DNA of 63,557 nt, filler included, from Octopus bimaculoides (taxonomy: Eukaryota): NCBI RefSeq assembly GCF_001194135.2. It is 7 parts of 7 records of this genome, joined end to end, with 100 filler letters (N's around TTAATTAATTAA, not from the genome) between each part and the next. Parts side by side here need not be neighbours in the genome. Positions count along the whole stretch, not along the records: positions 48,772 to 62,363 come from NC_069008.1; 6 more parts are not named here. One strand, given 5' to 3'. Every line of letters begins with the position of its first letter. Within the stretch, counting starts at the first letter, position 1. This document shows, in pieces, positions 51,415-62,774 of this stretch. The translations under genes were made by a program, and so were the position numbers. The notes under the pieces were generated by a model. That model worked only from the letters and a program-made list of their open reading frames with translations, had not been told where the DNA came from and did not search any database.

Positions 51415-54400
51415 TTATCTCTCATAATTAAAGAAACAGCAAGTATTATCTCCAAGAGCTCCAATAACTACAAGAGAATTGTTTGAAGCAAATAAGGCCA
51501 TGACATAACGAACTTCAATATCATCAGAACTGAGTAAAGTTTGGCACTTACTGTATAAAGAAACTTGATAAATATCTTTATTTAAATCAGCTATGAAAAC
51601 ATTTTCACCATGTATGGTCAGTGGCCGTTCAGAAATGCCTTGAAATGGTAGTTTTAGTAATGGTAGTGTTAAACTCCTAACTAAATCTCCTCCTCCTCTG
51701 TACCAACAAACAACACATTGAACTTTCTTGTCTTTGATAACAATAATGTCTTCACTTGATGTGACACCAATTGCTGAGATAGCTTTGTCTTCAATAATAA
51801 TTTTCTGACTGTAATCACATGTTTCATCATTGATGTTAAGCACGTCTACATATGAATTAATTCTACATGATTTAACATCACACGCACACACCAGTTGATT
51901 TTCATTCTTTTTATAAATCATGTTGTAGTTTCTCTTAGTGTCGATTGTTTTTAAAAGAGACAGATCTTCTTTGAAGAACATTAGTTGTTTCTCCTCATGA
52001 AAGACAACTACAAAACATTCTGCTGTCCAACAACATATGTCCTGTGGGACTTTATTTATTTTTCTCTGCTGAATTACGTGACCTTCTGTTGTGGTCATTG
52101 TAAGAGTATTTTTAAATAAGAACACAACGGCATTGTTTTGTAATACAACTGGCTTAATATATCTGTACATTCTATATTCCTCTTCTCCAAATGTAGTTAA
52201 GGGAAGAGGAAACATTGTTGTTCTATGAGGCAGACTCCTGACTGCTACTTGATCACTTCCTGACATACTATATGCGATGTAATTGCCACATCTCACCTTT
52301 AGTCTACCTTTGTAAATTATATCCTCTGATGTGCCTCCTGATTCACTGTTTTCCAATTCCTTACTTTGTTCATGACTGAATTTTTTATTATCTGCTTGAA
52401 CTTTACTGGAAGGGAAATGAAGAATAGAACCAAACTTCAATAATGACACACTTTCCAGAACATTCAGTTTGTTGTTGTCTATCTGTATTGCATGATATTC
52501 AGTCAAGTTAATATGTGCACACCAGTAGATGTTTTTCACTTTCCTCCATATTACACCGTAAGGTACAAGACTTTGCCAAATTTTATGCATTGTCAAATCT
52601 CGATTCAGTTGAAATATTTCTTCTCTGTCAGGGGCTGTGACCATGATATATTTTTCTGAGAAACACACACCACCAAGTGTTGTTCCAAGATTTGTGTGGC
52701 ATAACAGTCTCCCATTTCTCTGAAACATTTTAACATTACCAGGATTGGCTTTTTCAATCACAACTGTCTTACCATCAACAGAAATGTCTATATCTTTTAC
52801 CTGAACAGAATAGAGGTCAGTCTGTAGTCGGCAAACATGGAATTTTTCTCGATTAAGTTTGAACAAGCCTTCAACATATAAAGATGTTTCATTATTTCCA
52901 GCAAACCTTGGACCATTACAGTTAATATTGTTGAAATAGAATTTGCATTCAGAACGTTTTTTATTCAAAAATATTTTCTTGTATTCACCAGTTTGCGACA
53001 AACAGACAACATGTGTATGTGAACTGGTGGCATTCCACATAGGAATGTACACATAAATACCATCATTTGTCATACAGTTGTATGGAAAAAGGTGATTAAA
53101 TGAATGTAAACGTTCTCCATCAGAGTTTAGAAAATAGGTAAATGCATCACCACAGACAACAATGATATCATTAGCAATAACTGTAATATGTGAGAAGTCA
53201 CTGGAGGATTTGATCCCAGTTAAGTCTATTTCTTTCTCTATTTGAATGGCTGACTGTCTTTCATTGATATGGATCACAGACAGAGTATATTTCTCAAATC
53301 TCTCAATACCATGGTCACAAACAAATAGATTGTCTGACAAAGAAGCAATACAATTATAACATTTTTCTGTTTGGTAAGTTGAAAAGGACAATGGAAAATC
53401 TGTCTTTAATGTTAAAAGTTGGTTTGTATCAGTTGTAATAACCAGTGTGTTTGACTTCCAGCGACACATATGATGAAGGAGAACGTCCAGATGGATTGAG
53501 TCAAGAAGTTGACCATCAAAAGTTACTAATTTAATGCTATTATTATTTCTGTCGTATACAGCAATTAAGTTATTTTCAGTAATAACTGAACATTCAGCAG
53601 CCACTGGCTTTTTGTCTCCCAAACAAAGAGGTATCAAAAATTCTTGTGCTTTATCGGAAACTGTCAGATCCTCGATATACAATGCAGAAGTCAGCATTTC
53701 ACTGACACAAATCTTTCTGGAGAAAACATCTAATAAGTCAAGGGACATATTCAGCTGATTATTTGTAACGTAATCTTTCACCACTAAATCATGGTCATTT
53801 ATAGCAAACATACGGCTTTCATCGATCAGATAAATAAATTTTTTATCAATACATCCACCATACAGAGAATGTTGAGCTTTGAAACAGGAGTGTAAGGGAC
53901 TGGATCCCATTTTTGATGAAGTATTGTACACAAATATATTCTTCTTAGCAACAATTAATAGATTCAGTGATTCATTTTCTATTGTTAATGATTTTATCAA
54001 AAAGGGAATATTGACTGTAGAAATTATTTCACTTTGGTTGTGTTTTTGAACTGATACAATGTCTAAATGATATGGTTTATCACAAAAGCAAACAATTCGA
54101 CCTTCACTAAGTTTACAGGCCTTTACATAGGAATGGCTTAATGATATAATTCTAACTCGTTTTGATAAATTTCCAATAATCCATAATTCTTTCTCAAGTG
54201 GTAATGTCACTCCCATTTGGCTACTATCCCATCGGCATATATCTGTAGCTAAGGATGGCAGAGAGAATGTATGCACAACCTGTCCTCTTTTAGAAATATA
54301 TAACAAACACTCACTATTTATATCAGACACAACCACCTGTCTGTTCGGCAGATGATATATTTGAGAGATGAGAATTTTCTCATTTTCATCAACAGCACTG

Positions 54401-56619
54401 TATCGTATATTTAGATTTCTGATATAAGGACTTCTTGAGTGTAGACAACAATTTGACCATTCACGATAATTGTAAAAAAGGATCTTGTGGAGGTTAGAGT
54501 CCACTGCACAAATAGTTCCTTTGACAACTCCAATAGTAGAGACAGTAGCTGAAGGAAGTTGCAGCCACCATTTAACTTCTCCATATATATCATAACATAT
54601 GACAATTGACTCTCTACTGTAGAAAACATAGAAGTAAATTTTATTGGTGAAGATATGATGAGGATAGCCATTGAAATCAAGATGCCTTTCGAAAAGCTTT
54701 TTGCAGTGAATTGAATAAAATACCAGTTTATGTTCCTTCTTGATTACAACAACAAAATTGATTGGAGTTGCAGCAATGCTGACATCATAATGTTCTAATG
54801 AAATTTTGTTTTCAATAACAACTTCATTCTCCTTAACCAACAGAATATGTACCTCTTTGTTTTCCTCAGTGGTTAGAGCCAAAAACTTATTGGATACTAT
54901 ATGACACATTTGAATGTAATGAGCATGGACGTCTATCATGGGGCCTTGGTTTAGTACTGGACAATCAGCAGGGCATGTAATATATTGAATTTTCCTGTTT
55001 TCTTTAAACAGAACAAGAAATGAGCTTGAGTCCAATCTACAAAAGTCAGTAGGTTGGAACTGGAAAGTTAATGATTTTCTCCAAATTTTTGTTCCATTAT
55101 CAGCAAATAATATAGCTTTTAGATTCCAATAAGTAACTAACACAGAAGAGCTTGTCATAGGTAGAATCTTTTTAATATGGTAGGGGTCATCAATGTAAAT
55201 TTGATTGTTCAAAACAGGGGCTTGTTTCTGCTGTGAGCAAGTTAACCTTGGCCAAAAGTCTTCATTTCTCCCAACAACATGTCCAACACCGAAATAATCA
55301 GAAAAGAAAATATTTTTGGTGCTTACAGAAAAATATCGAGCTTTTATCCCAATTTCTCTCTGTGATACACTACCTGTAGATGAAATCTTATAAATGATAT
55401 TTCCTTGGAGAACATAAAAATAGTTGTCGTAAACAGTGAGGTCAGTTGGAGCAGTGAGAGAATGGCTATATAACTGAAATAACTGTTGACCTTCAAAATT
55501 ATAACAAGCAATTCTATTTATGTTGGCAAATGTTATTAACATACTATCATTTGTTCCTACGGCGATATTTGTAGGGTCGTCTTTCAGACTGAATATGCTT
55601 TCAACTGTATTATGAACCCAGTCTACGAGATATATTGTTTTACTAAACAATTTGATACCTAAAAAGGTACAATTCTTCACATAAAAAATTTTGTTAAAGC
55701 CACAATGAAAAGTTTTCATTTGACAACTAGAAGGATTAATAATGATAATTTTTTTCCTGAATGGGATCGTTGCCATAACAGTTTGTTTATCAACTCTGGT
55801 AAGGTCAGTGACTGGAGAAGGACTATGAACTACATTGCAGTCACCATCTGTTGTGGAACAAGATAAAGTCATCAAATGTAGTGAATATGTCACTATTCCG
55901 CCCTCGATTGTGACAATATTTGAAATTGTGTTTGGAGAATCTTTATCTGAAGCACTGAAATTTAATGTTCTGGGCACATCCGGTGAGAGTGGCCGAAACT
56001 TTTTCAACGGCTTTTGCATGACAATGGTCTTGTGTGAGAAAGAGTTGCTGTTTGTGTATAAGTCAAAACATTGTTCAAGAAAAGAGGCAACTTCTTTCTG
56101 AACAATATAATCATCAGAATTGGTTTTAAACAATCTGTTTATTGTGTGAATAAGATCTTGTATGAAAAGTTCTTTATTTAATCCTTCACTTTCTAAGTAA
56201 CTGCAAAATTGATCCTTTTTGTTTTCCAACATTTTCATATTGTTTGCACATTCATCGATTGTTAGCTTGTATCCAGCTTTGGGCAAAATACTTGGTACTT
56301 TAACTATTTCCTGCTTTTTCTGGTCACCTTTTTTATGTCTATTGTTTCTTAAGTCATGGGAATATTGCTTCTGCAATTTTTGTGAATCTTCATCTGAAAC
56401 TTCATCTGAAACTTCATCTGTCAAGGTTTCAATTTCATCTTTATGCTTATGATAATATGTTAAAGCTGTTTTCATTTTGAGTGATGATATCTTGAAGCTG
56501 TCTTCCTCTTCCTTTAATTTAAAATTCATATTAGGTGGCAAGCTGTCAGAATCATTAGCACACCTGAAAAAATGTTTTTTTTTGGTATTTTGTCTGTCTT
56601 TTTTCGCTTGAGAAGACAT
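51415..56619 (-). CDS. 1734-aa uninterrupted ORF: charged/helical N-terminus (~aa 1-230) plus ~6 tandem NHL-like (six-bladed beta-propeller-type) modules; uncharacterised TRIM-NHL-related protein
   Basis: A 5.2-kb open frame in AT-rich DNA cannot plausibly be chance, and the composition is globular. A start motif recurs about every 250 aa (aa ~235, 481, 750, 1007, 1273, 1487): hydrophobic strand-D-x-N...G-x(8-12)-[P]-x-D-[IFL]-C. Examples: PVTDLTRVD, PTDFCRLDS, ATDICRWDS, LHHMCRWKS, PQDICCWTA, and IAVYDRNNNSIKL. The fold call is by-eye pattern recognition, not an HMM result. Confidence 0.9.
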   Translation of the reverse strand: MSSQAKKDRQNTKKKHFFRCANDSDSLPPNMNFKLKEEEDSFKISSLKMKTALTYYHKHKDEIETLTDEVSDEVSDEDSQKLQKQYSHDLRNNRHKKGDQKKQEIVKVPSILPKAGYKLTIDECANNMKMLENKKDQFCSYLESEGLNKELFIQDLIHTINRLFKTNSDDYIVQKEVASFLEQCFDLYTNSNSFSHKTIVMQKPLKKFRPLSPDVPRTLNFSASDKDSPNTISNIVTIEGGIVTYSLHLMTLSCSTTDGDCNVVHSPSPVTDLTRVDKQTVMATIPFRKKIIIINPSSCQMKTFHCGFNKIFYVKNCTFLGIKLFSKTIYLVDWVHNTVESIFSLKDDPTNIAVGTNDSMLITFANINRIACYNFEGQQLFQLYSHSLTAPTDLTVYDNYFYVLQGNIIYKISSTGSVSQREIGIKARYFSVSTKNIFFSDYFGVGHVVGRNEDFWPRLTCSQQKQAPVLNNQIYIDDPYHIKKILPMTSSSVLVTYWNLKAILFADNGTKIWRKSLTFQFQPTDFCRLDSSSFLVLFKENRKIQYITCPADCPVLNQGPMIDVHAHYIQMCHIVSNKFLALTTEENKEVHILLVKENEVVIENKISLEHYDVSIAATPINFVVVIKKEHKLVFYSIHCKKLFERHLDFNGYPHHIFTNKIYFYVFYSRESIVICYDIYGEVKWWLQLPSATVSTIGVVKGTICAVDSNLHKILFYNYREWSNCCLHSRSPYIRNLNIRYSAVDENEKILISQIYHLPNRQVVVSDINSECLLYISKRGQVVHTFSLPSLATDICRWDSSQMGVTLPLEKELWIIGNLSKRVRIISLSHSYVKACKLSEGRIVCFCDKPYHLDIVSVQKHNQSEIISTVNIPFLIKSLTIENESLNLLIVAKKNIFVYNTSSKMGSSPLHSCFKAQHSLYGGCIDKKFIYLIDESRMFAINDHDLVVKDYVTNNQLNMSLDLLDVFSRKICVSEMLTSALYIEDLTVSDKAQEFLIPLCLGDKKPVAAECSVITENNLIAVYDRNNNSIKLVTFDGQLLDSIHLDVLLHHMCRWKSNTLVITTDTNQLLTLKTDFPLSFSTYQTEKCYNCIASLSDNLFVCDHGIERFEKYTLSVIHINERQSAIQIEKEIDLTGIKSSSDFSHITVIANDIIVVCGDAFTYFLNSDGERLHSFNHLFPYNCMTNDGIYVYIPMWNATSSHTHVVCLSQTGEYKKIFLNKKRSECKFYFNNINCNGPRFAGNNETSLYVEGLFKLNREKFHVCRLQTDLYSVQVKDIDISVDGKTVVIEKANPGNVKMFQRNGRLLCHTNLGTTLGGVCFSEKYIMVTAPDREEIFQLNRDLTMHKIWQSLVPYGVIWRKVKNIYWCAHINLTEYHAIQIDNNKLNVLESVSLLKFGSILHFPSSKVQADNKKFSHEQSKELENSESGGTSEDIIYKGRLKVRCGNYIAYSMSGSDQVAVRSLPHRTTMFPLPLTTFGEEEYRMYRYIKPVVLQNNAVVFLFKNTLTMTTTEGHVIQQRKINKVPQDICCWTAECFVVVFHEEKQLMFFKEDLSLLKTIDTKRNYNMIYKKNENQLVCACDVKSCRINSYVDVLNINDETCDYSQKIIIEDKAISAIGVTSSEDIIVIKDKKVQCVVCWYRGGGDLVRSLTLPLLKLPFQGISERPLTIHGENVFIADLNKDIYQVSLYSKCQTLLSSDDIEVRYVMALFASNNSLVVIGALGDNTCCFFNYER

Positions 56620-56625
56620 GTCAAG

Positions 56626-56670
56626 CTAAGTAAAAGCAGATCTATAATGAAATATGAACAAAATCAACAT
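56626..56670 (-). promoter_or_regulatory. Candidate splice acceptors just upstream of the ATG of the long ORF
   Basis: The minus strand reads tgttgattttgttcatatttcattatAG/atctgcttttacttAG/cttgacATG. This is a pyrimidine-rich tract with AG at 56643-56642 and 56627-56626. The second AG belongs to the in-frame TAG that bounds the ORF. Confidence 0.45.
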
Positions 56671-57269
56671 TTATTTTCTTGAAAATATTCAAATCTGAAG
56701 AAGATATTTACTTCATAATTTTCAAGCATCTTTTATCTTTTTCTTGTTTTAGTCTTTGGACTGTGGCCACGTTGGGCCACCACCTTAAATGCTTTAGTCA
56801 AACAAATTTTAAAGCCTGTTACTTATTGGTCTGTCTTGCCAAACCGCTAAGTTATGGGAATGTAAACAAACCAACACCACACACATATGCAAACACACAC
56901 ACACACACAAATTTTCACAGCAATCACAAGCTGGATATGCCTATTCATCTCCAACAATAGAGAGCAGTTGCCATATTTCATTCCATAGCAGCTACCTCTG
57001 AAGAGTGCAGGGCTACATATTCGGACTATTACCTAACACTTCTTTGAACCCCTAGTGCAAAACCGATTGGTAAGATCGGGCATAATGAATACATAAAGTT
57101 GTGCACTTTGATTAATATATTGTCAATGTTCAGTACCATATATTAGGTAAAGGCCTCATGGAGGCAAATTGGCTGATGCTGGTGGCACATGAAAAGCACA
57201 ATGACGAATAACAGAGAGCTTTGGCATTATGTTGTGCTTGAGAAGAAGACCCATTAAGCCAAGTAAAAT

Positions 57270-57500
57270 TGCAGTCGTGGCAGATACTGGTGTCCCGCAA
57301 ATGGCACCCATGCCAGTGGCAATTAAAAGCACCCATTATACTCTCAGAGGGGTTGGTATTAGGAAGGGCATTCAGCTGTAGAAACCATGCCAAATCAGAC
57401 TGGAGTCTGGTGCAGCCCGTCAGCTGGCCAGCCCTGGTCAAACTGTCCAACCCCCAACCCATGCCAGCATGGACAACAGACAAGAAATGATGATGATGAC
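57270..57500 (+). mobile_element. Interspersed repeat ending in (GAT)n, RTE-associated SINE-like (second copy 60060-60325)
   Basis: Both copies share ttaggaagggcat(t/c)cagctgtagaaac...cagat(c/t)ggagtctggtg...gtcaaac(t/c)gtccaacc..atg.agcatgga and a gatgat tail. Confidence 0.6.
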
Positions 57501-58699
57501 GATAACACATAACAGGCTTCTTTCAGTTTTCATCAACTAAATCCATTACAAGGCTTTGGTCAGTCTGGGGCTATAGAAAGCATTTGCCCAAGGTGCCACA
57601 CAAGGGACTGAATAAAAGACCACATGATTCAGAAACAAGCATATGTGCCTTTATAGAGTATAAGCAAAATAAAATATGAATTTTTTCCCCCACTCAATGC
57701 AGTGCCCCAGCATGGTCACAGTCAAATGACAGAAACAAGTAAAAGATAAAAGATAATTCCATTTATAAAGCAGTCTAATCAACATTTAAACAACTTTTCA
57801 TTAGAAAAATAATTAGAAATTAGCATTGATGAGATAAAAACATTATAAATCATAGAAATGTATAAAATATTGTTAAGCCACTTAGCCTAGTGATTATGAT
57901 GTTCTGCTCATGACTGTAATGTCAGGGGTTCAATTTTTGGACAGGGCAGCATGATGTTTTTCCCCTGAGCAAGGCACTTCATATCACATTGAGCCAGTTT
58001 ATACAACTGGAAAATAAACAAGAATCACCTCTCTCCAATGAATTCACTCCAGTACCTTTCTTTTTAAGCCTGATACTTATTCTGTCAGTTTATTTTGCCA
58101 AAACCACTAAGTTACAGGACATTAGCACAACAACACCAGTTGTCAAGCAGTGTTGGGGGACAAACACAGACACAAAGGCACACATATACATACATACATA
58201 CAGACAGACTAGTACAAACATGCTATCTTTAAGATAGTATATTTTACATTGATATTATACCACTGTATCACATATTACTATAGTATATATGCATAAGTAT
58301 AAACATGGCCTGCAGGTGGGAATAGAGTTTAATGAAGGGAGGCGTGCGTAGAGTTTCTGAAGATGGTTATTTCACTCTTTAAATGTAGTTTAAGGGAGAT
58401 TTGGCTGCTATTGAAAGGAATACAAGGTGCATTATTAAAGTATACTGGAATTATTACTGAATATATTTTTCATGTACATTGTCACTGCAACTATTGTATG
58501 TTATGCATAGGTTTTCTTTGATTATTGTATAATCTCCAGGTTATTCCTGACATTTTAGTGAGTCTATCAGGTACATTTATTTCATTAGAAAATCCTACAA
58601 ATTATGCTCTGAAAGTCATGTATCTTCATAATCGTTGTGAGGGGTCTGTATTGTTTGTTCTTTGTGTTACTAGACAAATATTTATTTACTATTTGAAAG

Positions 58700-59660
58700 T
58701 ACAAAGTAGTATCAAAAAGTTCCTGGACTAGTTATGTTTAACCATTTGAGCCCGTAACACCAGTTTACCGGTGGATGATTTATTTTTCTCTATACCATAG
58801 CTCCACTCTACCAGTGGAGTACATTGGGAAGCCAGGTCAAATAAGGTTCAGGGGGTTAGGGCTCAAAGGATTAATAAAATATAACTTAAATACCTAAGTT
58901 TTAATATCATCTCCTTCTAAATAGACACCTTGTGCAGTGTATTACTACATTACTGCCACATTTGGAATCTGGTGGTCCTGCCACTTTTGGAATCTAGCCT
59001 GGAAGTCCTTTTCTCTAAGCAAGTTGAGGACCTTCTGTGATTTACTCTGAATCTCAACAATGGTGTTAAAAGTATGGCCTTTGAGTTGCATTTTCATTTT
59101 GGGGAAGAAATGGAAGTCCACAGGTGCTAAATCTGGTGAATAGGGCAAGTGTGGAAGTGATACCGTGTTGTTTTTGGCAAGAAACTAACAAGTGAGGAAA
59201 TCTTGGTGACAGGGTGCATTGCTGTCATGAAGAATCCAATTCTTCCTACTCCACAGATCCGGTTGCTTTCACCAAATGTTCTCCCTCAAATGCTTCAAAA
59301 CATTGCAGTAGAACTCTCGAGTGACGGTCTGGCCCTGGGGGACAAATTCTCAATGCACAACATCACATTTCTGAGCACTTGAGGCATTTCTTCCAGATTT
59401 CTCATTGTCTTCTAGAGATGTTCTGCTTTTGAAGCACCAGTACCACTCAAAACATTGCGTACAACCCATTGCCTTCTCACTATAAGCTTTTAAAGCATGC
59501 TCAATGTTTCACATTGGTAATTTTTGTTCCTGTCCATGACAAAATTGCAGACTACAGCATACATGTGATCACAAAGACACAAATTTCACAACTTGCAAAG
59601 TAAACACAGTGATGTCACTCAGCACACTGCCCCATGAAGGTCGCTGCTAGCTCTCACTGC
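58700..59660 (-). mobile_element. Internally deleted mariner (DD34D-type) relic
   Basis: EFVPQGQTVTREFYCNVLKHLRENI, WILHDSNAPCH, LPYSPDLAPVDFHFFPKMKMQLKG and a C-terminal GVYLEGD. A TIR-like gtatcaaaaagttcctggact lies at ~58709-58729. Confidence 0.85.
58742..58870. mobile_element. 129-bp TTAA-flanked MITE (piggyBac-type) inserted in the mariner end
   Basis: TTAA at 58738-58741 and 58871-58874. Terminal repeats CCATTTGAGCCC and GGGCTCAAAGGA match at 10 of 12 positions. Confidence 0.7.
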
Positions 59661-62289
59661 ACATGCAACCATGTGATGTATTATACGTTTTTTTTTATAT
59701 GGTATATATACATATCCTTTTCTAATGTACACGTTTTTAATATAATACATGTACATTTATAATATCATATCATATCGTATACATTTACCCATTATATGTT
59801 AAATCATACTGTGCGTTTATATATCGTAATGTATTATCTTAAATTGTCAAATATTTTTATACAACTTGGAAACTATGCATGTTTATAATATAGATGACAA
59901 ATATATATATATAGATGACAAATTGTCTGCACTCTTTGTAATGCTTACAAGCTTTCCTCAGCAATGCTTCAGTATTAGTAAGATGTCAGTAATGAGTGTG
60001 TGTTTGACTTTTCAGTCCTGTTGAGCAGATGAAATATGAAGGATAGAGGACTGCTTATAATTGGACTGACTCCTGTGCAGGTGGCATGTAAAAAAAACAC
60101 CATTTGAGCATGGCTGTTGCCAGTACTGCCGGACTGGCCCTTGTACCAGTGGCACGTAAAAAGCACCCACTACACTCTCGAAGTGGTTGGCGTTAGGAAG
60201 GGCATCCAGCTGTAGAAACTCTGCCAGATCAGATTGGAGTCTGGTGTAGCGAGCTGGTTCGCCAGTCCCCAGTCAAACCGTCCAACCCATGCTAGCATGG
60301 AAAGCGGACGTTAAATGATGGTGATGACATGTCAGAGTGACGATGAAAAGAGGACAGTATTAGGTGGTTGTGAGATGTGCTAAAAACAACAGCTAAATTT
60401 CCCTTTAATCACACACAAAATTTTTTTTGTGTGTATAATTGTATGAATTCCTGAGTGTAGAACACAAATTGGCAAAAATTTTCTGAAAATTCCAGAAAAT
60501 AAAAAGGATCTAAAACTAGTTATAGGTTGCTTAAACCAGAATACTAGCCTTATTTTATTGACCCTGAAAGGATAAAAGGCAAATCAGCATTGATAGAATA
60601 TGAACACAGAATATAAAGATGGATGAAATGTTGCTAAGAATTATGTCCAGTGCAAGTAGCTATTCTATCAGTTCATCAAGAGAATTAAAATAGTTATGAC
60701 AATAATTTTTACAGTTCTATATTAAAGAGATGAGGAATAATGCACAAAAATTTTTACCAGAGTAAAACGTCTGGGCTTCAATTCCTGACTGGAATATTTC
60801 TTTGGATTTCAGTACACTTGTTCAGGGCAGTTCCTTGTAAGCGGCTGCCATAAAATGGCTTCTATTCATGTGAGTTAGTTTTATAGATGTGACGGGGAAA
60901 ACTTGTAAACATTATGCAATGTGTGTGTGTGCATGTATGTATTAATGAATGTGCTTGTGTTTGAGTGTGTGTGTGCCTGCTCATGCATGTGTGCTTTTAT
61001 TCCTCAGTTTGATTGCCTCTTTATTTCTATCTTCTTCCATCTAGCTTTCACCATCATAATCAAAAGTATTACCATCCCTCTTCCTCACTCTACACTATTC
61101 ACAAATTTATGTAGGTCAACCACTGCTTCCTACTCAAACAAGTTGTTACTGTTTTCTTTTCTTTTTCTTTTCTTTTCATATTCAGGAGTGGGTGGCAAAA
61201 TGCTTTTTTGCCAACAACATGGTTCCGGATTCACTCCCACTGCATGGCACTTTGGACAAAGTGTTTTCTTCTATAGTCTTGGGCTGACCAAAGTCTTAGC
61301 CTTGTGAATGGATTTGGTAGATGGAAAACTGAAAGCCCATCTATATGATACATAAAAAGGGTAAAACCCCCTTGGACATGAATGACCATGGGATGTACTT
61401 AGAAGTTACCCTCTGAGGCACAAGTCCATGCAAGATTATTTATGGAAGACCAGTAGTCGCCTATGCATACCAGCCTCACCTCTCCACACCACCAATATTA
61501 TACAAGGGAAAGGCAAAGGCATATACAACTTGGCACTAGTGATGTCACAACTCTTTTCTACAGCTGAAGGAACTGGAGCAATGTGAAATAAAGTGTCTTG
61601 CTCAAGAGCACAACATGCAGCCAGGAAGTACACAGAGTTCAGGCAGAGGTTGAAATTATACAACAGTTGTGCAATAGATTTTCAAGCAGGATACATTGAA
61701 AGATACAAGTAGGATATTACAGTTTGGAAAGCAAATGTGACAATGGAGTAAAAACTTTAAAAACGGTTTTATTAACAATTTTTCTGAGGAGACAGGGTCT
61801 ACCCACAGTCTTTCTCAGGAAGTGAAACCAAGACTTATTATTATTTTTTTTTCCAGCATGCTTGTTTGAAGTGATCACTGCGGAAACAAACTGTTATGCA
61901 GTATGTAAACAAACTGGAAAGATAGCTTGTGGTTCCCTTTCAGACAGACACTCTCTCACAGCAGCATTTGCGACTACACCACCAGCAAACACTCTTCCCC
62001 ACCAATTTCTTTTTCATTAAGTGCCCATTTCTACAAATTTCAGTAAGCATCGAAAATACTTTAATAAACAAAATAAACTGAAACGATAAATGCAAACAAA
62101 AATAATTCAACAAACAAAATAGGCACTTTCGAAAACGCTAAAACAAACCGAAAATACTTTTGAAGTCTTCTTTGAACAGTCGATTCAAACATAAACAAGC
62201 AAGAAAAAAACATGAAAAAACAACAACGCGAGGACGTGGAATAAGTACAGTGTTATTGGACGCTCAGGAAAGGAAAGAAAAGAAAGAGG

Positions 62290-62324
62290 ATTTAATGTTT
62301 CGAGCGGAGCTCTTTGTCAGAAAT
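62290..62324 (-). pseudogene. Solo degenerate hammerhead relic
   Basis: The minus strand reads AUUU CUGACAA A GAGC ucc GCUC GAAAC AUU AAAU. Two CG>CA changes separate it from an intact CUGACGA...GAAACGUU core, and stem I AUUU/AAAU is intact. Confidence 0.5.
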
Positions 62325-62774
62325 ATAGGAAAAGTCCGAAGACATATTGGAATCATATTGTATNNNNNNNNNNNNNNNNNNNNNNNNNNNNNNNNNNNNN
62401 NNNNNNNTTAATTAATTAANNNNNNNNNNNNNNNNNNNNNNNNNNNNNNNNNNNNNNNNNNNNCACTTTATTTCACATTGCTCCAGTTCACTCAGCTGTA
62501 GAAATGAGTTGCGTCGTCACTGATGCGAAGCTGTATCGGCCTTTGCCTTTCCCGTGGATAACACTGGTGGCGTGGAGAAGGGATAACACTGGTGGCGTGT
62601 CTAGTTGACCATGGTCATTTTCCCGTTCATACTTTCCACGTCCCATTCACACACCCACACACACACATACATATGCACACATACATACATACATACATAC
62701 AAAAATACACGCGTACACAGACATATATTCTTACCAACGGAATGGTATGCTTTATCTATCTATCTATCTATCTA

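Follow-up and report, generated by a model that had tools for sequence, protein, structure and literature searches.

A single-exon Octopus bimaculoides gene predicted to encode six tandem NHL-type modules related to the TRIM-NHL propeller

What kind of protein is encoded by a single open reading frame (ORF) of 1734 codons in the octopus genome, in which a first-pass annotation had seen about six tandem NHL-like propellers? The window analysed here is a stretch of 63,557 nucleotides of Octopus bimaculoides DNA made up of seven parts of the genome joined end to end, and the gene in question lies on its minus strand at 51415..56619, within the piece (48772-62363) that comes from NC_069008.1 (assembly GCA_001194135.2, chromosome record CM046628.1, about 9.17 Mb). 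The ORF listing gives 1734 unbroken codons and a stop at these coordinates, which coincide exactly with a gene annotated on CM046628.1. An in-frame stop stands three codons 5' of the ATG, directly after a polypyrimidine-AG, and the whole coding sequence (CDS) is therefore contained within a single exon, as the annotation had held. At the local composition (33% G+C, hence a stop probability of 0.076 per codon) a run of 1734 stop-free codons has a probability of about 1e-59, so that the ORF is real and its length far beyond chance. A paralogue on the same chromosome, 2.8 Mb distant (P0003), is likewise annotated as a single uninterrupted CDS. We consider it very probable that this gene encodes a six-module NHL protein that arose from the propeller of TRIM-NHL proteins, and, taking the statement as a whole, we think it rather likely that it is an intact, maintained gene whose NHL-type modules form a non-catalytic, multivalent binding platform.

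The NHL character of the protein is not visible to single-sequence methods. Neither the window protein nor any of 14 family members gave an NHL match in Pfam, even when expectation values (E) up to 1 were allowed. Single-sequence Pfam and PDB searches of the protein yielded noise only (PspAA, E 0.19; PLL2 lectin, E 0.5), and a member-by-member Pfam scan of the family gave only sub-threshold hints of propellers (DUF4934, WDR90 and WDR35). A family profile of the whole protein, searched against PDB sequences, found Brat at an E of 0.13 only. Pooling the modules raised the NHL signal relative to that profile: when the pooled module profile (A5) was searched against all PDB sequences, the top seven matches were the NHL propellers of TRIM2, TRIM3 and Brat at E of about 5e-4 (whole-sequence values, summed over several weak blade matches), with TRIM71 lower.

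The relatives of the protein lead to the same domain. When 1.84 billion representative proteins were searched exhaustively by HMMER, a profile of residues 234-1290 returned just 38 of them at E <=1e-3, and the strong ones are the octopod family itself. In the weak tail (E 1e-8 to 7e-4) most alignments fall on the fourth module, which is the region that TRIM-NHL proteins from outside the family match; according to Pfam, this tail consists of proteins with RING, B-box and NHL domains, with B-box and NHL, or with NHL only. It includes a bivalve protein and CAE1315789.1 (P0039) of the cuttlefish Acanthosepion pharaonis. In a PDB sequence search the latter proves to be a genuine TRIM, its N-terminus matching the RING/B-box/coiled coil of TRIM28, TRIM2 and TRIM3 and its C-terminus matching the NHL domains of TRIM2 and TRIM3 at about 1e-11. 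The nearest outside relatives are thus cephalopod and bivalve RING/B-box/NHL proteins, in keeping with the link to divergent molluscan TRIM-NHL proteins that had been drawn at first sight.

Seven NHL domains from the weak-tail proteins were assembled into an external NHL alignment, with which each module profile was compared by hhalign. Probabilities range from 84.9% to 99.4% for the single modules and reach 99.5% (E 2.2e-23) for the pooled modules, whereas a reversed NHL alignment, used as a control, gives <=1% for every module. Modules 5 and 6 lie outside the search profile, so that their NHL matches are not circular. Profile A5 also matches P0039 itself (hhalign 98.3%, E 1.2e-14, P0039 residues 410-621). 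Three independent lines thus justify, at the profile level, the NHL label that the modules had been given. The parts of the gene are listed below; blocks are the confident all-beta stretches of the AlphaFold2 models, in residues, and percentages are hhalign probabilities against the NHL alignment.

51415..56619, minus strand: complete single-exon CDS, 1734 residues plus stop (ORF listing, exact gene match, upstream stop)
55921..56619, minus strand: N-terminal region, residues 1-233, hydrophilic, with some patches lysine-rich and others acidic, no Pfam domain
55183..55920, minus strand: module 1, residues 234-479, about 23 strands (block 234-454; NHL 94.4%, E 9e-8; reversed control 0.2%)
54373..55182, minus strand: module 2, residues 480-749, about 24 strands (block 470-719; NHL 95.4%, E 1.7e-8; in register with modules 4 and 6)
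53602..54372, minus strand: module 3, residues 750-1006 (confident at 751-899, about 15 strands, and low at 902-990; NHL 97.5%, E 6.4e-12)
52804..53601, minus strand: module 4, residues 1007-1272, about 22 strands, the most NHL-like (blocks 992-1219 and 991-1249 in two models, fair confidence; NHL 99.4%, E 8.3e-22)
52162..52803, minus strand: module 5, short, residues 1273-1486 (AlphaFold2 secondary structure and predicted local distance difference test, pLDDT; NHL 84.9%, E 6.4e-6)
51418..52161, minus strand: module 6, residues 1487-1734, to the C-terminus, about 23 strands (block 1444-1734, fair confidence; NHL 98.6%, E 6.5e-16)

The module starts had originally been placed near nucleotides 55920, 55180, 54372, 53600, 52803 and 52160, which correspond to residues 234, 480, 750, 1007, 1273 and 1487. 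This placement is correct: the confident all-beta blocks of the AlphaFold2 models begin at residues 234, about 470, 751, about 992-1008, 1274 and about 1490, agreeing within about 15 residues, and the profile alignment of the modules is in register. A two-blade motif had also been noted at the start of the modules. The quoted examples are found in module 3 (VVVSDINSECLLYISKRG at residues 762-779 and ATDICRWDSSQMGVTLP at 791-807) and in module 4 (IAVYDRNNNSIKLVTFDG at residues 1019-1036 and HHMCRWKSNTLVIT at 1049-1062), and they have counterparts in modules 2 (TDFCRLDSSSFLVLF) and 6 (QDICCWTAECFVVVF), so that the motif is indeed shared.

That the modules are homologous to one another is apparent only from profiles. 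A self-BLAST of the protein gave no off-diagonal match and no internal repeats; since self-BLAST is blind to repeats of this kind, profile methods are required. From a family alignment of 14 octopus proteins at about 50% identity (A1) the six modules were excised and their profiles compared by hhalign. Modules 3, 4 and 6 match one another closely (85% for 3 and 4, 96% for 3 and 6, and 96% for 4 and 6) and in register (positions 1-186 of module 4 against 1-190 of module 6); for module 2 the probability is 66% with module 6 and 33% with module 4, and modules 1 and 5 are weakly similar to the remaining modules. Modules 2, 3, 4 and 6 can be aligned jointly and coherently over their whole length, and these four have in common the motifs 'VVVSDxN..L..I...G' in the first blade and '..DICRW.S....V' in the second. 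Any two modules are only 15-19% identical, and the modules share roughly as much identity with TRIM-NHL propellers. All six go back, as whole-propeller duplicates, to a single ancestral unit, which is homologous to the C-terminal NHL propeller of cephalopod TRIM-NHL proteins.

How far the predicted structure agrees with this picture can be judged from two overlapping AlphaFold2 models (residues 190-1290 and 740-1734, each built from a 17-sequence alignment), for which the mean pLDDT is 59.7 and 66.7, respectively. All-beta blocks cover modules 1 and 2 (234-454 and 470-719), the first part of module 3 (751-899), module 4 in both models (about 992-1249) and the first part of module 5 (1274-1394), and a further block (1444-1734) takes in the rest of module 5 and then module 6. 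DSSP assigns about 23, 24, 19, 22, 16 and 23 strands to modules 1 to 6. Judging by these counts, modules 1, 2, 3, 4 and 6 would be full size (about 250-270 residues), with about six four-stranded blades each, and module 5 would have about four blades, split by a disordered insert. Module 5 (214 residues in total) comprises about 12 strands, the insert at residues 1394-1444 (window 52288-52440), which is about 50 residues long and rich in serine, glutamate and lysine, and about four further strands; it measures 213-230 residues in every paralogue in which it is complete. The early count of about six propellers therefore stands as six tandem all-beta modules, and is to be amended in that five are full-size and one is short.

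Low-complexity insertions stand at fixed sites within modules of the paralogues. A poly-arginine/poly-serine run occurs in module 3 of P0003 and P0004 (at about residues 902-915 of the window protein), precisely where the model of the window protein is disordered, and a long, acidic 'ESEDQ(I/L)' tandem array lies inside module 6 of P0004 and P0005, where the module measures 394 and 378 residues, respectively, compared with 248 in the window protein.

Outside the modules the protein carries little that is recognisable. The N-terminal region is disordered and is its least conserved part, with a mean pairwise identity among paralogues of 0.36 compared with 0.47-0.64 in the modules, and residues 190-233 have a pLDDT below 30; a short helical segment may exist at residues 120-200. 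No signal peptide or transmembrane helix was found in a hydropathy analysis of the whole protein, because the first 40 residues are hydrophilic (mean Kyte-Doolittle -1.65) and the highest 19-residue mean, 1.51, falls inside predicted beta-strand segments; the first reading of the sequence had come to the same view. Pfam scans of the protein and of family members found no RING, B-box or coiled-coil family, and the N-terminal 233 residues contain only four cysteines. A hidden upstream RING/B-box exon was also considered and is ruled out for 10 kb on both sides, as tblastn with TRIM N-termini detected no RING, B-box or coiled-coil coding sequence <=10 kb either side of the gene. A DEVSDEVSDED acidic stretch in the N-terminal region is encoded by a 12-nucleotide tandem repeat at 56383-56420 (3.2 copies, 96% matches), a possible length-polymorphic site.

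Comparison with TRIM-NHL proteins (the class VII TRIMs TRIM2, TRIM3, TRIM32, TRIM71/LIN-41, Brat and Mei-P26, and the divergent RING-B-box-NHL proteins of cephalopods and molluscs, P0039 among them) gives the protein its place. The modules are homologous to the C-terminal six-bladed NHL domain of these proteins and have a second-blade motif in common with them ('P-x-D/G-I-C-R/L-W ... V-T-L-P-x-x-K'), and TRIM-NHL proteins, too, are cytosolic and without a signal peptide. However, the octopod protein has no RING, B-box or coiled coil, and hence no intrinsic E3 ligase or dimerisation module; it carries six propellers in tandem rather than one; and its modules are only about 15-20% identical to any NHL domain, which puts them under the Pfam threshold, in a family that is restricted to octopods. 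Because it lacks the RING, the B-box and the coiled coil and has six propellers in place of one, the protein is a TRIM-NHL derivative without the ligase part, and not a member of the TRIM-NHL family.

Other known NHL proteins are more remote, and none is nearer in sequence than the cephalopod TRIM-NHLs. NHLRC2, the teneurin NHL domain, peptidyl-alpha-hydroxyglycine lyase and bacterial multi-NHL proteins (such as P0048 and the PknD sensor) belong to the same repeat class, and in the bacterial proteins many NHL repeats are possible. The animal proteins among them, however, have a single propeller, and the proteins of this group bear other partner domains (thioredoxin, YD shell, CARDB or kinase).

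Proteins with several propellers on one chain are the best structural matches. Foldseek searches of the PDB gave more than 1400 matches per model at E <=0.001, and multi-propeller proteins, namely DDB1, LRP2/megalin, Trm734, IFT-A and SF3b130, stand at the top of both lists with E of 1e-17 to 1e-20. TM-scores (template modelling scores) are low, at 0.15-0.29, because the relative domain orientations differ; for the models in hand, the matches can be taken to establish that there are several propellers in a row, but not to which class they belong. The LDL-receptor family (LRP2/megalin and LRP1) resembles the octopod protein in having many six-bladed propellers of the same broad clan along one chain, and ranks high in Foldseek. 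Its members, however, are extracellular and have a signal peptide, EGF and LDL-A modules and a transmembrane anchor, all of which are absent from the octopod protein (for EGF and LDL-A, there were zero Pfam matches).

The same matches could be read as pointing to a substrate adaptor or core scaffold of a ubiquitin ligase or another machine, in the manner of DDB1, CPSF160 and SF3B3, in which the propellers would dock subunits instead of sensing RNA or pathogens, and the ligase function would come in trans from a separate RING protein. Scaffolds of the DDB1/CPSF160/SF3B3 type serve as docking platforms. Like Trm734, they carry several beta-propellers on one cytosolic or nuclear chain, the best Foldseek matches of both halves of the octopod protein are DDB1, SF3b130, Trm734 and IFT-A, and its modules derive from the substrate-binding domain of an E3 ligase. 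Yet the TM-scores (0.15-0.20 for DDB1, where E is 1e-18 to 1e-20) reflect only the presence of several propellers in series, and there is no sequence similarity to the DDB1 family, whose three seven-bladed, WD40-like propellers are interleaved and accompanied by a helical C-terminal domain. Neither the interleaved topology nor the helical domain is present in the octopod protein, whose modules are sequentially contiguous duplicates. Moreover, a core subunit of this kind is normally single-copy and universally conserved, whereas here we are dealing with a fast-evolving, multi-copy family found in octopods only. On balance, we consider a role of the DDB1 type unlikely.

All multi-module relatives are octopod: they come from three Octopus species (O. 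bimaculoides, O. vulgaris and O. sinensis) and from Argonauta hians. The family has at least six loci in O. bimaculoides, and the number is similar or higher in each of the other two Octopus species; paralogues are about 50% identical, and a divergent Octopus subfamily (32% identity) is collinear with the window protein over residues 207-1730. Two proteins of A. hians, at 36% identity, are collinear with residues 112-1720. No multi-module homologue from decapodiforms (squid and cuttlefish) appeared in the exhaustive search, in which these animals are represented by single-propeller TRIM-NHLs only. Since the architecture is common to Octopus and Argonauta, the six-module layout, its short fifth module included, is older than the split between them.

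The family members are named 'uncharacterized' or 'hypothetical' in their sources, except for two short fragment models labelled MIB2(-like), and literature searches on the family, the gene IDs and octopus TRIM-NHL expansions found nothing relevant. The suggestion of a lineage-specific family with no described function is thus upheld: it is confined to octopods, its members are unnamed and no searchable paper mentions the genes. The two exceptions, P0036 and P0090 (O. vulgaris CAJ1099278.1 and CAJ1099277.1, 'E3 ubiquitin-protein ligase MIB2(-like)'), align with positions 1-80 of module 1 (E 1e-20); either a gene model has been mis-joined, or a piece of a family member could truly be fused to a MIB2-like gene. 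In each species an outsized share of the family sits on one small chromosome, namely CM046628.1 in O. bimaculoides (18.6 Mb), a 29.19-Mb record in O. vulgaris and CM016888.1 in O. sinensis (15.1 Mb), and further copies are dispersed over larger chromosomes. The O. vulgaris record contains more than 12 short 'hypothetical' fragments (CAI9742749 to CAI9743143).

Is the gene maintained by selection? Its orthologue in O. sinensis (locus L003) is syntenic, with non-coding flanks about 89% identical, and aligns over all 1734 residues at 84-92% identity with one frameshift near residue 675 (L003:11953-11959, at about 1,490,100 of CM016888.1), which explains the 680-residue gene model P0017 (LOC115226593). 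The 1060 codons past the frameshift are still open, so that its origin is either technical (an indel in the assembly, or a sequencing error) or a mutation of very recent date. In a Nei-Gojobori comparison of the two orthologues, nonsynonymous divergence (dN) is 0.048 and synonymous divergence (dS) 0.107, giving a ratio (omega) of 0.45 for the whole gene. By region, omega is 0.55 in the N-terminal region and 0.32, 0.55, 0.41, 0.62 and 0.43 in modules 1 to 5, and is lowest, at 0.23, in module 6. The gene is under purifying selection, yet is fairly fast-evolving.

These data also bear on whether the gene is a decaying or non-functional lineage-specific duplicate, its ORF open by luck or newly free of constraint. 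Truncated gene models and fragments are indeed numerous in the family, there is the frameshift in the O. sinensis orthologue, and typical housekeeping genes are more tightly constrained than an omega of 0.45 implies. However, chance would hardly have kept 1734 codons open, dN is well under dS in every module, and the full architecture is kept in Argonauta and in the Octopus paralogues that are only 32% identical; the open codons that follow the O. sinensis frameshift fit a sequencing error or a very recent event. We regard decay as very improbable.

That a mobile or selfish genetic element is the source of the protein is hardly credible, for although the ORF is a single-exon CDS with many copies and fragments concentrated on one small chromosome and with repeats and a retrotransposon remnant close by, Pfam scans found no transposase, integrase, reverse transcriptase or endonuclease domain in the protein, no terminal inverted or long terminal repeats (LTRs) bracket the ORF, the copies are only about 50% identical and hence old, the O. 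bimaculoides locus has a syntenic orthologue in O. sinensis, and the nearby endonuclease fragment is a separate element; we rejected this identity on the lack of terminal repeats and of mobile-element domains and on the syntenic orthologue.

The surroundings of the gene contain several repeats. At 48772-49719, on the minus strand, an ORF broken by an assembly gap (a run of N) gives weak matches to endonuclease/exonuclease/phosphatase (E 0.075) and endonuclease-reverse transcriptase (E 0.015) families; its fragments are probably the remnant of a non-LTR retrotransposon about 1.7 kb past the stop codon of the gene, and its G+C content is 50% compared with about 33% in the surroundings. The 3' flank of the gene also carries a pair of 125-nucleotide repeats (49848-49972 and 50607-50731) that are 99% identical and 759 nucleotides apart, and a 39-nucleotide sub-repeat occurs in four copies between 49848 and 50731; the pattern suggests a tandem duplication of local origin or a portion of a repeat element. 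Beginning about 110 nucleotides upstream of the ATG is an inverted repeat with 64-nucleotide arms (56728-56791 and 57691-57754; 78% complementary, 899 nucleotides apart), which could be an insertion resembling a miniature inverted-repeat transposable element in the promoter or 5' untranslated region. An Rfam scan of the piece returned zero matches. A scan for bacterial promoters and terminators upstream of the ATG was discounted, as the gene is eukaryotic and the result meaningless.

What, then, might six NHL-type modules on one chain do? Since the protein has no E3 ligase module, signal peptide or membrane anchor, it would most likely be a soluble, non-catalytic and multivalent binding platform of the cytoplasm or nucleus. 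The NHL propeller of LIN-41 binds RNA, and NHL propellers of other TRIM-NHLs bind proteins. Direct binding of RNA by the NHL propeller has been described for Brat (PMC4015489), and RNA binding for that of Mei-P26 (PMC9070667). By analogy, each propeller of the octopod protein may present its own ligand-binding face for RNA or protein, so that one chain could hold up to six different or repeated ligands and might act as a scaffold for ribonucleoprotein (RNP) or protein complexes, or as a high-avidity sensor. A multivalent cytosolic sensor or scaffold had been suggested at first sight and is plausible, but we put this mechanism forward tentatively, with clearly less assurance than the identity of the modules. 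An omega of 0.45, paralogues that are about 50% identical, and numerous copies and fragments are in keeping with a recognition family that is diversifying, but do not identify the ligand; nothing in the evidence favours RNA over protein ligands, or immunity over other processes.

Several points weigh against the view of the protein as a six-module NHL platform. No single family member meets the Pfam NHL threshold, and the NHL assignment rests on profile-level evidence. The confidence of the AlphaFold2 models is only moderate, with most of the second half of module 3 and the inter-module geometry unreliable, and closed rings and blade numbers are read from strand counts; the sequence of module 5 is, in addition, too short for six blades. 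The scaffold or sensor function is put forward by analogy. No basic surface is conserved, and the isoelectric points (pI) of the modules vary among paralogues between 4.1 and 9.7 without a consistent trend, so that uniform RNA binding is not supported; net charge and pI were accordingly dropped as a proxy for RNA binding. Finally, the O. sinensis frameshift could mean that the gene is dispensable in that species, although the codons that follow it are open.

It is nevertheless tempting to speculate on a more specific role. Perhaps octopods evolved, by repeated duplication of the RNA-binding propeller of a TRIM-NHL protein, a ligase-free 'hexa-NHL' class of multivalent RNA readers, which could sense foreign or repetitive RNA in the cytosol, or else organise RNP granules in neurons or the germline, with paralogue-specific propellers providing a combinatorial recognition code. 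We hold this to be doubtful, and a longer shot than the scaffold of the DDB1 type considered above; if true, however, octopods would have an RNA-recognition system that is specific to their lineage and unmatched in model animals.

The NHL propeller is familiar as a ligand-binding domain that occurs once, at the C-terminus, in E3 ligases governing development, the fate of mRNAs and antiviral responses. The ligase-free tandem hexa-NHL chain is a new architecture made from this known domain, in an uncharacterised, octopod-specific family, which agrees with the early impression of an unusual arrangement; in it the propeller has parted from the ligase and come to stand six times on a single chain, a form that then expanded as a fast-evolving, multi-copy family of octopods. 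For about 20 octopus gene models that are now called 'uncharacterized' or 'hypothetical', an annotation as tandem NHL-propeller proteins of TRIM-NHL descent is now available. Should each module bind RNA or protein on its own, this family would show how avidity can be engineered naturally with propellers; it would also offer divergent NHL scaffolds to structural study and be a candidate for cephalopod-specific biology, for instance in RNA regulation, immunity or reproduction.

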